A stretch of 9,000 bases of DNA from assembly GCA_965644495.1 (NCBI GenBank), contig CBFFSA010000096.1:1-9000 (forward strand), in the 5' to 3' direction. The notes under the pieces are model-generated. The model worked only from the letters and a program-made list of their open reading frames with translations, was not told where the DNA came from and ran no database searches. Source of the stretch: Perkinsela sp. CCAP 1560/9. Its lineage: Eukaryota > Protista > Euglenozoa: Kinetoplastea. This document shows positions 1,316 through 6,449 of this stretch, one piece after another. Each line of letters starts with the position of its first letter. The stretch's first letter is position 1. Position numbers and translations under genes: made by a program.

Positions 1316-2812
1316 TCACTTCCATCGATAAGATATCCGGTCAGTATTCCCCATCCAATAATTTAATATTGGTGACAAACATAATAATAGAAATGCTACC
1401 ACCAATGCGGCTACCCCTAATTGGGTAAATGCATGGCTGTAATTCGGGTTGGTGACTAACGGCGATGCACTGTGACTGGTACCGGCTGCATAATTAGAAA
1501 AGAAACTGGCAAATACGGCAGCAACACCCGTATTTAGCAATAGACTACCCATACACAGACTTTGCCAACGCGCAGGGATCAGCAACCCAACCATCGCATA
1601 ACCAATCGGGCTAATCAGCAATTCTGCTAACGCTTCTAATACATACGTTGAAAAGACCCAAGAAAATGATACATAGCCATTATTAGCGAAGGCAATTCCA
1701 AGTGGCAAAATTAATAAACCAAGCCCACCCAAGGTCATTCCCATGGTAAATTGAATAGGCACTGAAAAACGGCCACTGCCCTGCTCACGCGCACGCATAA
1801 AATAACGCGCCAATAAAGGGCCACCAATAAAAATAGTAACCGCATTAATGTTAGACAACCAACCGGGAGCAATCTGCCAACCAAAAAGGTGTAAGTTAAC
1901 GTTATTTTTGGCGAAAAACATCAAACTCATCGGTGATAATTGGTAAATAATCCAAAACATTTGCGCACATAATAATAAGACTAAAAATGTTAAAAAGCGT
2001 TTGCGTTCTTGCTGCTGGTGGCTCATTGCCCCATAAAATAAGACAATGACAATCACTGCACCGGCTAATAAAATAACACCATCACCGATCGCTACATGAT
2101 GTAATAGAAAATACAATGCTGGCACTAATGCAAGTAATATCGCAATACCAATGGCATTTCTTCGAAACTGAACAGGTTTATGATCACACTGAGATAGGGT
2201 GGTTTGTTTGTCACGTAAATAGTTCCACCCAAGTGATAAAACCATAATCGTCACCAGATTAAATAACGATGCAAATAGAAATAACCAGGTGTAATTATCG
2301 TGTAATTGAAAATACCCAGATAAGGTAAACCCCATCAGAAAACCAATATTCATTGCACCATAATTCCAGAAAAACGCTGTTTCACGCTTTGAAACATCAT
2401 CGCTGCTAAATAGCTGTGACAGTAGCATATTGAGGCATGTCACTAAGGTACCAGTGCCAATTAACACACCAGCCAATCCCCAGTAAAACAGTTGCAGACT
2501 ACCGTCTACTAATGCAATTGTGCCTAATAATTGGAATATTATGCCAAATAACACCATGGCACGATAGCTTAAATAACGTCCGCCAAGGTAACCGGATAAT
2601 TGATGCAATGCAAAGTTCAGTGCGAAATACACCCCAGCAACTAAATTAGCATCGTGTTCACTAAACCCTAAACGACTATTCATGTATAACACTAGCGATG
2701 CAAACAACACGGCAAAACTAATCGTGCTAAACAGTTGCACACTATATAAAAAGCCAAAGCCGTGTGGCATCGACAAAAATGATTTTTTAACGGGTTGCGT
2801 TGTCGTCGTCAT
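1316..2812 (-). CDS. POT/PTR-family (MFS) oligopeptide transporter, divergent type
   Basis: 498 aa with many hydrophobic segments. POT-like segments: SGYLGGRYLSYR (cf. GGxxADRxLG), KRETAFFWNYGAMNIG (cf. FxxFYxxINxG), MFWIIYQ, LAELLISPIG (cf. GELxxSPxG). AGGAG Shine-Dalgarno 8 nt upstream of the ATG. Confidence 0.88.
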   Translation of the reverse strand: MTTTTQPVKKSFLSMPHGFGFLYSVQLFSTISFAVLFASLVLYMNSRLGFSEHDANLVAGVYFALNFALHQLSGYLGGRYLSYRAMVLFGIIFQLLGTIALVDGSLQLFYWGLAGVLIGTGTLVTCLNMLLSQLFSSDDVSKRETAFFWNYGAMNIGFLMGFTLSGYFQLHDNYTWLFLFASLFNLVTIMVLSLGWNYLRDKQTTLSQCDHKPVQFRRNAIGIAILLALVPALYFLLHHVAIGDGVILLAGAVIVIVLFYGAMSHQQQERKRFLTFLVLLLCAQMFWIIYQLSPMSLMFFAKNNVNLHLFGWQIAPGWLSNINAVTIFIGGPLLARYFMRAREQGSGRFSVPIQFTMGMTLGGLGLLILPLGIAFANNGYVSFSWVFSTYVLEALAELLISPIGYAMVGLLIPARWQSLCMGSLLLNTGVAAVFASFFSNYAAGTSHSASPLVTNPNYSHAFTQLGVAALVVAFLLLCLSPILNYWMGNTDRISYRWK

Positions 2813-2815
2813 TGC

Positions 2816-2848
2816 AATATCTCCTATTGTGCCGCAATAGCCGATATT
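2816..2848 (-). promoter_or_regulatory. Inverted repeat/hairpin covering the POT gene Shine-Dalgarno
   Basis: Minus strand reads AATATC-GG-CTATTG-CGGCA-CAATAG-GA-GATATT: two 6-bp perfect stems separated by a 2x2 purine internal loop. AGGAG lies in the 3' arm. Confidence 0.55.
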
Positions 2849-2849
2849 T

Positions 2850-2878
2850 ATCGTAAGGATAGCGATTACTCAAGTCAA
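2850..2878 (-). promoter_or_regulatory. Putative sigma70 promoter of the POT transporter gene
   Basis: Minus strand TTGACT (2878-2873), 17-nt spacer, TACGAT (2855-2850): 5/6 and 4/6 matches to TTGACA/TATAAT with optimal spacing, 37 nt upstream of the ATG. Confidence 0.65.
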
Positions 2879-2884
2879 GTCACC

Positions 2885-3011
2885 TATACTCTTCTCGTTT
2901 TAAATTTAGGCTTTGTTGGCTGCGTCTTCTCACAAAAGTCATGTATTTCAATACACTCCTTTTGATTCAAAGACTTGCCGCCTCGCCTAAATTCAAAACG
3001 CTTTGAGTATA
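2885..3011. mobile_element. 127-bp ERIC-like palindromic element (MITE-like)
   Basis: Ends TATACTC...GAGTATA. 16-bp arms at 2896-2911/2985-3000 with one mismatch that is a G-U pair on the minus strand. Nested stems GTCTT/AAGAC, CAAAAG/CTTTTG, TGTAT/ATACA. The minus strand carries AGGCGGCAA, TGAATC, AGGAG, TGAC, GTGA and ACGCAGCCAAC in the order found in the ERIC consensus as recalled. The length equals the canonical ERIC length of 127 bp. Confidence 0.85.
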
Positions 3012-3761
3012 TTACAATACCACTGCAATCAGTGCCATTAGCGCAATTCCTAAACCAAAGTAACACACACTAACCATTGAGGCATCACCAACGTTACTAC
3101 TTAATGCTTCATCCATAGCAACATATAGGAATGTACCTGCAGCAATCGCACTAAATATCGCTAACATTAATTGCCCCTGTGGCGTGGTGAGATACATATG
3201 TAAACCATATCCCATTAACATTCCTAATGGGGTCATCCAGGCAAAGAAAATCACAGCGTACCACAATTGATTTTTGGATAATTGGCAACGACGCATATTA
3301 ATGAGTAAAGCAAAGCTATCTGCACCTTTGTGTGCAATGATAGCGGTTGCAATGGCAACTGTATTAGCAACACTATCACTAATCCCCAACGCACCACCTA
3401 AAATGATAGAGTGAATACACAATACCAATAATAATAAATACGGTTGTAAATGCCGATGAATTTGTGATGAAGTATGTTGACAAATACGCAATGCGGCTTG
3501 TCGTAATAAATATAATAACCACACGGTGACAATCGCAATCACAAAGGTATATGGATAAGTGACACGACCTAATGCATCATGTAAACCCTGCTCTGCACTG
3601 GGTAACATGTGGATGATTGCTGCACTTAAGAAAATACCACGAGCAAAGGCTTCACCATCGATCAACCAACGGCGTGCATTGGGTTTGTCTCCCAATACAA
3701 TTGGCCAAGCACCGCCGGCCACACCAACTGCAAAAATGATTAATGCTAAGCTAATCATCAT
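3012..3761 (-). CDS. ZIP (ZRT/IRT-like, ZupT/SLC39) family divalent metal transporter
   Basis: About 8 hydrophobic segments with motifs AFARGIFLSAAIIHMLP (TM2), IHSIILGGALG (TM4), AIIAHKGADSFAL (TM5), FAWMTPLG (TM6), AIAAGTFLYVA (TM7). Start taken as ATG 3761; TTG 3776 is the alternative. Confidence 0.88.
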   Translation of the reverse strand: MMISLALIIFAVGVAGGAWPIVLGDKPNARRWLIDGEAFARGIFLSAAIIHMLPSAEQGLHDALGRVTYPYTFVIAIVTVWLLYLLRQAALRICQHTSSQIHRHLQPYLLLLVLCIHSIILGGALGISDSVANTVAIATAIIAHKGADSFALLINMRRCQLSKNQLWYAVIFFAWMTPLGMLMGYGLHMYLTTPQGQLMLAIFSAIAAGTFLYVAMDEALSSNVGDASMVSVCYFGLGIALMALIAVVL

Positions 3762-3806
3762 ATTGTTTGTCTGCAAAACCTACCGTAAAAAACAGCTCTC
3801 GAGATA

Positions 3807-4229
3807 TTATTCTCGCTCAGCATTACGATCATCAAAGTCATTTTCCTGTCGATCACCACGTTCAATATGCAGGTGGGCATTCTCAACGTCATCACGATCA
3901 ACATCAAGACGACCACTATCATCTTTTAACAAGGCTTGATCAGCATCATCTTCTGGGAGCACACTGACCGATGGTAATGGATCAACTTCATCATCAGGAT
4001 GATAATTATGCTCGATCACATCTGGCTCAAATTCACCACGTTGTGCATCATATTCAGCATACTGATCACCAGCAACCACTTGCGTAGCTCCTCTGGTTGG
4101 ATTAATCACTGCTTGCTGCGCTCGCTCAACCGTGGCAGATGATAACTGAGTACCCGAATGATTATCACTGGTATCACACCCGGTTACCAGAATAATTAAT
4201 GCAATAATAAATACTAATTTATGCCTCAT
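3807..4229 (-). CDS. Hypothetical Asp/Glu-rich lipoprotein
   Basis: Strong SD (AGGAGG) upstream. Signal peptide MRHK + hydrophobic core + lipobox-like VTG-C18. Start overlaps the tatD 3' end by 11 nt. Mature part is strongly acidic. No family recognised. Confidence 0.78.
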   Translation of the reverse strand: MRHKLVFIIALIILVTGCDTSDNHSGTQLSSATVERAQQAVINPTRGATQVVAGDQYAEYDAQRGEFEPDVIEHNYHPDDEVDPLPSVSVLPEDDADQALLKDDSGRLDVDRDDVENAHLHIERGDRQENDFDDRNAERE

Positions 4230-5422: not shown

Positions 5423-6449
5423 TTAATTAGCTAGACGATACCACTTCACCAATAAACTTTCCAATAATAATTGCTGATTGGGGTTGGCTGCACTATTCAA
5501 CATACCACGTGTGTTGGTTAATTGATCAATAAATGTAAATAGCTTACAAATAAAATGAGATACATCGATATCAGGTACTACTAATGTTGACCAACTAGCC
5601 GGTAAACACTGCGCATGACCATGTAATTGCCACACTAAACCACAACAGGCACGGATCCACTGTGTGATTAGATCATCGATGGCTTGCGTCATCCAAGTTT
5701 GCGCAACCATCACTGGCGAACACTGTTGCTGAAAGACCATTTGCAGCGCCTCTAACCACTGTGTCATTTGTTCAGTTAATTGCGGATCACTAGCGATTGC
5801 CAATGCCGTTAATGGTGCTCCATCACTGACAGTTAACCATTGTTGACACTGGGTTAATGACACATCCTGATTGGCTGCTTGTAACGTTTGCTGTAACCAC
5901 GCACTGCTTTTTTCAAGTGGCGGCACTTGGAATACCACGTGTATACAACGACTGCGTAACGTAGCTGGTAAACTCATCGGTTGTGCAGTGACTAACAACA
6001 ACACTGTATTGTCTCCTGGCTCTTCTATTATTTTTTAATACACTGTTAACCGCTGCTGTTGTTAAACAATCCGCCGGTTCAATCACTACTACGCGAAAAC
6101 CGGCATGCTGCGGGGTTTGCTGTAACGATTGTAACATTACACGCACTTGATCAATTTTAATTGTGCTGGCGTTTTGTTCTGGGTAAACGTGGTAATAATC
6201 AGGATGTGTACCTGCTTGTTGCCAACGACACGCCTGGCAATGCCCGCAGGGTACTGTTTCATCCTGTTGTTCACACAACAATATCGCGGCACAATAGCGA
6301 GCTACTCTCTGTTTACCTAAACCCGGTAACCCGCTTAATAATAGGGCATGAGGCATCGTTGCTGTTTGCTTGGCTTGAACCAATTGGGTGAGGTCCATGC
6401 CACGCATTGATACAGGGGGCAATATAGTGTGATCAATCTCAATACTCAT
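5423..6449 (-). CDS. holB: DNA polymerase III subunit delta', split into two ORFs by a 1-nt frameshift at the T6 run 6031-6036
   Basis: N-part has HALLLSGLPGLGK, a four-Cys Zn module (C...PCGHCQAC), HPDY, IKIDQVR. Removing one A from TTAAAAAATAATAGAAGAG restores NSVLKIIEEPGDNTVLLLVT...LPATLRSRC, giving a 341-aa protein. Syntenic after tmk with ATGA overlap. Confidence 0.92.

Follow-up and report, generated by a model that had tools for sequence, protein, structure and literature searches.

A divergent ERIC-family MITE and its candidate IS630-family mobiliser in a Dot/Icm-bearing, Legionellales-like bacterium

ERIC sequences are among the oldest known bacterial repeats, and a typing PCR in wide use is built on them. 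Wilson and Sharp (2006) reportedly described size variants, short ones that lack an internal stretch and long ones in which fixed internal sites carry insertions. Duplication of a TA dinucleotide is the signature of IS630/Tc1-mariner transposition; to our knowledge, experiments on the mobility of ERIC are lacking. ISfinder files ERIC as MITEEc1, in the IS630 family (PMC11434687, PMC11602168, PMC6267812), and reviews still restrict its distribution to Enterobacteriaceae and Vibrionaceae (PMC10969869, citing Zo 2011). MITEPlu5 of Photorhabdus luminescens (Zamora-Lagos et al. 2018, PMC6267812) resembles the element described below in several respects: it is a 123-bp ERIC relative with a TA duplication, it is present in hundreds of copies, its predicted hairpin is very strong and its ends resemble IS630-type elements starting with CCC after the TA. 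Two further families, RUP of Streptococcus pneumoniae (IS630-Spn1) and Correia/NEMIS of Neisseria, are likewise MITEs with a TA duplication whose transcripts form long hairpins, those of Correia being cleaved by RNase III. Mobilisation of RUP by an IS630-family transposase was proposed from matching terminal repeats (PMC2229807). The Coxiella elements QMITE1 and QMITE2 were considered as the same kind of element and rejected, their lengths being 400 and 190 bp and their duplications 7-9 bp. The link between ERIC and IS630 is thus already known in outline from MITEEc1 and MITEPlu5; what is added here is the host range, the cognate insertion sequence and a pattern in rRNA spacers.

The copy from which we started lies in a window of 9,000 nt, the whole stretch of DNA that was analysed. 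The window belongs to contig 96 of a 21-Mb assembly and matches OZ220716.1 (MAG: Gammaproteobacteria bacterium) at 100% identity; that record is the 2,447,832-bp host chromosome, hereafter G001. On the minus strand, positions 2885-3011 form a TA-bounded, imperfect palindrome of 127 nt, whose letters match those transcribed in an earlier, sequence-only reading of the window. The features to which we refer are as follows.

2885..3011, minus strand: ERIC-family MITE copy, 123 nt long and flanked by a TA on either side, with its 'f' orientation on the minus strand
2985..3011, minus strand: 5' outer arm, f positions 1-27, terminal TA included, corresponding to the left terminal inverted repeat of the host IS630-family element
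2912..2984, minus strand: conserved ERIC core, with two internal loops, two covarying stems and an apical hairpin
2885..2911, minus strand: 3' outer arm, f positions 101-127, terminal TA included, corresponding to the right terminal inverted repeat of that element
3012..3776, minus strand: ZIP-family metal transporter gene (Pfam Zip, 97.9 bits)
1316..2812, minus strand: POT/PTR2-family peptide transporter gene (Pfam PTR2, 118 bits)
2850..2878, minus strand: promoter-like site, a consensus match only, with TTGACT and TACGAT 17 nt apart, located between the element and the start of POT

The internal loops of the core read AGGCGGCAAG on the 5' side and GCAGCCAAC on the 3' side. As RNA, the minus strand is predicted to fold into one long interrupted hairpin with a minimum free energy of -53.4 kcal/mol (z -11.1), a fold that none of 200 dinucleotide shuffles matched. 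The plus strand reaches only -39.6 kcal/mol (z -7.5), since some G-U pairs exist only in the minus-strand form. The TAA stop codon of the ZIP gene (3012-3014) directly abuts the element, and the POT gene starts 72 nt downstream of it on the same strand. The promoter-like site is weak, two such sites having been found against 1.2 expected. A search of positions 2650-3150 for a terminator-like site found none, and a scan of the whole window against Rfam 15 at the gathering score gave no match. Two minor observations concern the neighbouring genes. An ORF at 3807-4229 on the minus strand had been called pilZ; Pfam lends this name no support, no PilZ match being obtained even at E<=1 and the top match being DUF7251 (E 0.064). 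Further along the minus strand, at 5423-6449, holB is split into two overlapping ORFs, of which 5913-6449 carries the DNA_pol3_delta2 N-terminal domain and 5423-6004 has weak C-terminal-domain matches only; a frameshift, a pseudogene or a sequencing error could account for the split.

We then compared the element with its best-known relatives. Searched by blastn in a set of 5,426 complete E. coli genomes (28 Gb), the 127 nt matched the repeat in the metR-metE intergenic region in 2,103 of them, with 74-76% identity over 101-109 nt (E 1e-7). This alignment is gapless; it preserves the outer arm and the motifs of both internal loops, whereas the two inner stems are changed on both sides: CCCCGG/CCGGGG in E. 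coli versus AAAAG/CTTTT in the window element, and CTTAC/GTAAG versus TGTAT/ATACA. A profile HMM built from host copies alone retrieved the same E. coli repeat with an E value of 1.6e-15. That this repeat is an ERIC was judged by eye from motifs that it has in common with the published E. coli ERIC/RU-1 sequence (PMC2759123, Table 1a), the RefSeq records being without annotation of it. The sequence-only reading had seen in the element a highly divergent member of the ERIC family, with whole stems replaced in a compensatory manner around retained loop motifs, and had proposed an alignment to ERICs as a check; both parts of that claim are borne out, the first by blastn, the gapless alignment, the HMM and the covariance model described below, which likewise matches the metR-metE repeat, the second by the alignment to the E. 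coli repeat itself.

The likeness to ERIC/IRU/RU-1, or MITEEc1, of Escherichia, Salmonella and Yersinia (with variants in Vibrio) extends to the overall organisation. Both are imperfect palindromes of 127 nt including the TA ends, both have the loop motifs, the apical hairpin layout and the termini TATAC...GTATA, both occur as short variants of about 70 nt and as internally expanded ones, and both are intergenic and frequently abut stop codons. The two differ in that the inner stems of the host element are AT-rich, having been replaced pair by pair, in that the host genome here also holds a cognate IS with near-identical 27-nt ends, and in the host itself, which is here a Dot/Icm-bearing, Legionellales-like bacterium. 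A partial literature search found no report of ERIC elements in Legionellales. The element is a MITE of the known ERIC family whose host range is new and distant; it is not a lone structured RNA gene.

Further copies abound in the host chromosome. BLAST of the element against G001 gave 56 matches of 74-98% identity, which share the termini TATACTC...GAGTATA and have unrelated flanks. These copies sit in short spacers, mostly intergenic, and frequently lie 0-20 nt from the end of an ORF. A covariance model with 45 base pairs, R1, was built from an alignment named A3; at E<=1e-6, and among the 150 of 851 candidates that were scored in G001, it gave at least 67 matches representing at least 63 distinct loci. 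About 35 of the loci are full-length, about 14 are 150-190 nt long with internal inserts, and about 8 measure 59-78 nt; in the long forms the inserts follow f position 37 or 85. One short form of 72 nt (L002:1473-1544, on contig 99; 61.4 bits) was observed between rplF and rplR, in the conserved spc operon. The window copy itself scores 144.2 bits with R1 (E 6e-35). Its nearest paralogue, at locus L008, is 98% identical, and by this measure the window copy ranks among the youngest in the host.

The dispersal of the family decides against the simplest alternative, namely that the window holds a single-copy regulatory hairpin, a terminator or a chance palindrome between ZIP and POT. The position of the element directly after the ZIP stop codon is what such a view would have in its favour; but there is neither a U-tract nor a terminator-like site, Rfam has no match, chance folds as stable did not appear among the 200 shuffles, and the copy number, with unrelated flanks around the dispersed loci, refutes it. 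The sequence-only reading had named copy number in the source genome as something to be determined, and the count obtained leaves this alternative with practically no credence.

In contigs from four public runs of one study, assembly breaks at the element, where depth is 50-150 times that of the flanks, and no empty allele was seen among these contigs, which end at the repeat. A joint in them that 'skips 68' was considered as an excision product and rejected; it represents a short paralogue. At the ZIP locus of G002 (here the only relative with multiple copies), a malic enzyme gene converges on ZIP and there is no POT gene. Neither source yielded an empty counterpart of the window site.

The family extends well beyond G001. 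R1 gave 59 matches in G002 and at least 150, among 1,183 candidates, in G315. The latter genome measures 2.8 Mb, and its 16S shares 86% identity with that of G001 and 87.5% with that of Legionella. Most of the G315 matches are nearly identical 128-nt copies, and G315 carries hundreds of such ERIC-like copies (loci L121-L140 among them), a number comparable with MITEPlu5; their near-identity suggests a recent burst. No match was obtained when this abundant family was compared by blastn with the E. coli genomes, and its link to ERIC is through the covariance model only. A sample of 151 genomes of the class to which the host belongs included 35 with an R1 match at E<=1e-5. None of the 14 R1-positive genomes placed by 16S is enteric, Vibrio or Pasteurella; two have 16S 95% identical to that of Legionella and the others are 80-85% identical to E. 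coli. This agrees with the wider element family that had been anticipated from the window alone. With respect to MITEPlu5, the host context differs at phylum level.

The mode of insertion can be read from G315. A 24-nt repeat of that genome is present in 29 empty copies that have one TA at the centre, and 4 more times as a variant, and the same repeat is filled three times by a 124-nt insert with TA on both sides. Comparison of these 33 empty and 3 filled paralogous sites shows directly that insertion of the family duplicates the TA. The window copy has flanking TAs at both ends; the duplication as such is demonstrated for the family, in G315.

The sequence-only reading had left the mobilising protein unnamed and had suggested a search for co-occurring transposase genes. 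Such a search turned up a good candidate. G001 has exactly one match to Pfam DDE_3 (117.8 bits), and its closest plasmid-borne relatives, 37-48% identical, carry the annotation 'IS630 family transposase'. A unit of 1,202 bp (L060:1381-2582) contains the gene, and the 27-nt inverted repeats at the ends of this unit are 96% complementary. The 5' outer arm of the element, counted by eye, equals the left end of the IS (L060:2582..2556) at 24 of 26 positions, and the family consensus of the 3' outer arm equals the right end (L060:1381-1407) at 23 of 26. Even the asymmetry of the ends is common to both: arm position 18 is G on the left and A on the right in the IS ends and in the element arms alike, which makes one G-U pair. 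The outer 26-27 nt of the hairpin arms are therefore the terminal inverted repeats of a resident IS630-family IS, and the ends of the element no longer call for a mobiliser still to be found. The match is more extensive than that described for MITEPlu5, where likeness to ISPlu3/8/19 concerns the extreme termini.

Taken together, the findings argue for a non-autonomous ERIC/MITEEc1 transposon that inserted at a duplicated TA and was moved in trans by an IS630-family DDE transposase, a reading to which we give a probability of roughly 85%. The transposase would recognise the 26-30-nt terminal inverted repeats, that is, the outer arms of the hairpin. The window copy lies on the transcribed strand and, if co-transcribed with its neighbours, would form a very stable RNA hairpin without a U-tract; by analogy with published work on Yersinia, such a hairpin may act as a stabiliser or processing site rather than as a terminator.

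In G001 the transposase gene is interrupted after 66 residues, inside a TAT codon, by a foreign palindrome of 99 nt with a duplicated TA, as read from the alignment with an intact relative in G315. This palindrome (L060:2255-2355; about 99 nt, 31-nt arms, ends TATAG...CTATA) is unrelated to the ERIC element; one MITE has here inactivated the IS that would move another. Since the sole cognate IS of G001 is broken, the host copies are probably immobile now and drifting. G315 has at least five copies of a 1,107-bp IS (e.g. L080:1470-2576, L097) with 30-nt ends of the same type as those of the G001 IS. Two of the copies have uninterrupted frames of 345 aa, the others a TGA or shorter frames, and the proteins are 77-80% identical in amino acids to the G001 transposase. 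These intact frames, together with the ERIC-like elements, offer a concrete transposase/element pair for a mobility assay.

Within G315, there was no sign that MITE arms had evolved together with the intact IS of that genome. The arms of the abundant family match a truncated second IS (L141:1596-1621; 51-54% amino acid identity), not the intact one, and pairing of transposase and MITE is thus not one-to-one. This and the broken IS of G001 count against the proposed mobilisation. For the burst family this raises the possibility of cross-mobilisation or of a true partner that was lost. Another IS630 relative, in G050 (44% amino acid identity; L084), has ends of a different type (TATAGTC...), and short palindromes derived from those ends (L084:2552-2611 and 2771-2798) adjoin it; this IS may have a MITE family of its own. 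Clear terminal repeats were found at none of the other distant IS630-relative loci.

A hairpin with covarying stems, in a host with seven Y1_Tnp genes, might also recall REP/REPIN elements, which are moved as single-stranded hairpins by a Y1 (HUH) transposase of the IS200/IS605 or RAYT type. The termini of our element, however, are those of an IS630-family IS, and it duplicates a TA, as the paralogous empty sites show, whereas Y1 transposases make no target duplication. Moreover, G002, albeit an incomplete genome, combines its R1 matches with no Y1_Tnp match, and an AT-rich element of 127 nt is unlike the 20-40-nt GC-rich REPs. REP/REPIN elements with RAYT are short GC-rich palindromes without target duplication, associated with a Y1 transposase that the repeats flank; the present element departs from them in composition, length, ends and duplication, and mobilisation by a Y1 enzyme is highly improbable.

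Transposition by an IS630-family enzyme accounts for the ends of the element; the part between them was examined by covariation. In a set of 48 copies from G001, G002, G315 and E. coli, 91.9% of the cells form standard pairs and 34 of the 45 pairs have changed on both sides. Two-sided cells numbered 193; shuffles gave 58 +/- 6.6, and sliding of the partners never gave more than 56. In helix 4 of alignment A3, two-sided changes were present in all 12 pairs. A test set of 32 independent R1 matches from 29 genomes, none of them used for model building, gave 89% paired cells and variation on both sides in 45/45 pairs, figures that come from a model-fitted alignment, which favours the structure. 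Covariation of the hairpin, which the sequence-only reading had proposed to examine, is thus strong. In the 32 matches, information per position was 0.96 bits for internal loops, 0.67 for internal stems and 0.54 for outer arms; conservation is highest in the two loops and the apical hairpin, which make up the ERIC core. No counterpart of this core was found inside the IS. RUP and Correia/NEMIS differ in that neither has the conserved ERIC core and no sequence relationship to them was seen; Correia, in addition, carries an IHF site and promoters. By the measure of these alignments, conservation of the core goes beyond what IS terminal repeats explain. The earlier proposal that selection acts on a structure and its loop motifs, and not on terminal repeats, therefore stands in one half: across the 29 genomes the loops are indeed better conserved than the arms, but the arms are IS ends.

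These results lend some substance to a different view, in which the element or its core is a structured RNA module selected by the host for mRNA or rRNA processing, stability or insulation, transposition only spreading it, and in which the window copy was kept for shaping the ZIP and POT transcripts. The excess of two-sided changes over shuffles and the better conservation of loops than of stems and arms would both be expected of such a module, as would the G-U pairs that let only the f strand fold well. Yersinia ERICs, moreover, change mRNA stability in an orientation-dependent manner (De Gregorio 2005, as summarised in PMC2229807 and PMC10969869). On the other hand, covariation in palindromic DNA can also arise through selection for transposition or through hairpin-templated repair, and the G-U pair at arm position 18 is inherited from the difference between the left and right ends of the IS.

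The fate of inserted copies bears on the same question. Rare (private) variants were taken as mutations that arose after insertion. In G001 their frequency per site and copy was 0.022-0.028 in paired and 0.036-0.040 in unpaired columns. The ratio of G-U to A-C outcomes among private mutations was 14:9 in G001 and 20:20 in G002, and strand-specific selection was not detected by this comparison in either genome. Nor was there an orientation bias between co-directional genes, 14 copies being sense and 10 antisense. Similar rates in paired and unpaired columns, no G-U excess and the 14:10 orientation indicate that inserted copies mostly drift; they seem to decay nearly neutrally, as far as small numbers of paralogues that are not independent of one another can tell. 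Compensatory changes, as seen in the alignments, distinguish subfamilies. Given that the private mutations of inserted copies appear nearly neutral, we infer that selection acts among master copies or element lineages, through mobilisation or retention, and not on each insertion. The same observations count against a module selected by the host at each site, which we regard as unlikely, and fit a transposon mobilised by an IS630-family enzyme.

Sites in the rRNA operons show a different picture. In 16S-23S spacers, R1 found 9 distinct positive sites in 7 genomes, 9/9 of them sense to the rRNA:

L059:3141-3303 (G001), rRNA-spacer ERIC-like element, sense to rRNA
L119:3056-3180 and 3600-3725 (G315), two rRNA-spacer ERIC-like elements, sense to rRNA
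L190:2159-2283 (G132), rRNA-spacer ERIC-like element, sense to rRNA
L184:3382-3508 (G103), rRNA-spacer ERIC-like element, sense to rRNA
L195:3114-3234 (G050), rRNA-spacer ERIC-like element, sense to rRNA
L186:3319-3442 and 3675-3798 (G057), two rRNA-spacer ERIC-like elements, sense to rRNA
L181:615-739 (G048), rRNA-spacer ERIC-like element, sense to rRNA

In G132, G057 and G103, which are Legionella-like genomes, a spacer element runs right up to the 5' end of tRNA-Ala; the copies of G132 and G057 are clearly orthologous. The spacers could be a safe haven for insertion, or the copies could be domesticated processing hairpins. The sense-only pattern, which is in line with the host-selected RNA module set out above, and the conserved core hint at a role at the RNA level, for which the spacer copies are a natural place to test. 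One could go further and see in the 70-nt ERIC core a portable functional RNA module carried between different IS630-type ends and more than filler between binding sites of the transposase, spread over distant gammaproteobacteria and domesticated in the rRNA spacers of Legionellales; the core would then serve RNA processing or stability as a hairpin whose internal loops are sequence-specific, AGGCG and CAAC being the loops that an RNA- or ssDNA-binding partner would recognise. This joint claim is a tentative one, and we consider it possible but rather doubtful.

The host itself lies outside the groups in which ERIC is usually reported. The 16S of G001 is 82.5% identical to that of E. coli; among the named records of the plasmid collection, Legionella adelaidensis comes closest, at 86.9%, with Vibrio, Pasteurella and enterics at about 83%. 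In a 16S tree whose outgroup was unsound, G001 clusters with other genomes, apart from the E. coli, Vibrio and Pasteurella rows. IcmK/DotH (PF12293), a component of the Dot/Icm type IVB secretion apparatus, was detected in G001, G002, G315, G031 and G036 but not in any of the 14 genomes that served as controls. From 16S identity to a few named records and from IcmK, the host appears to be an uncultured Legionellales-like gammaproteobacterium, the order-level name resting on these two markers, and it is more probably an associate living inside the protist than a free-living contaminant. Contigs 96 and 99 of the kinetoplastid/amoeba assembly belong to this Dot/Icm-bearing bacterium, whose complete chromosome is OZ220716.1. 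The case for a non-enteric host, originally a guess from gene order, is thus stronger than guessed; a host among Enterobacteriaceae or Vibrionaceae, which describes the reported distribution of ERIC and is not a structural criterion, was not found here. ERIC-family elements evidently thrive in Dot/Icm-bearing, amoeba-associated, Legionellales-like bacteria, with at least 63 copies in G001 and at least 150 in G315 per genome of 2.4-2.8 Mb. The 16S comparisons yielded one observation of another kind: locus L210 (NZ_CP101851.1, 'Xanthomonas oryzae plasmid pYNCX4', 5.5 kb) has a 16S almost identical to that of Vibrio campbellii, and this record looks mislabelled or contaminated.
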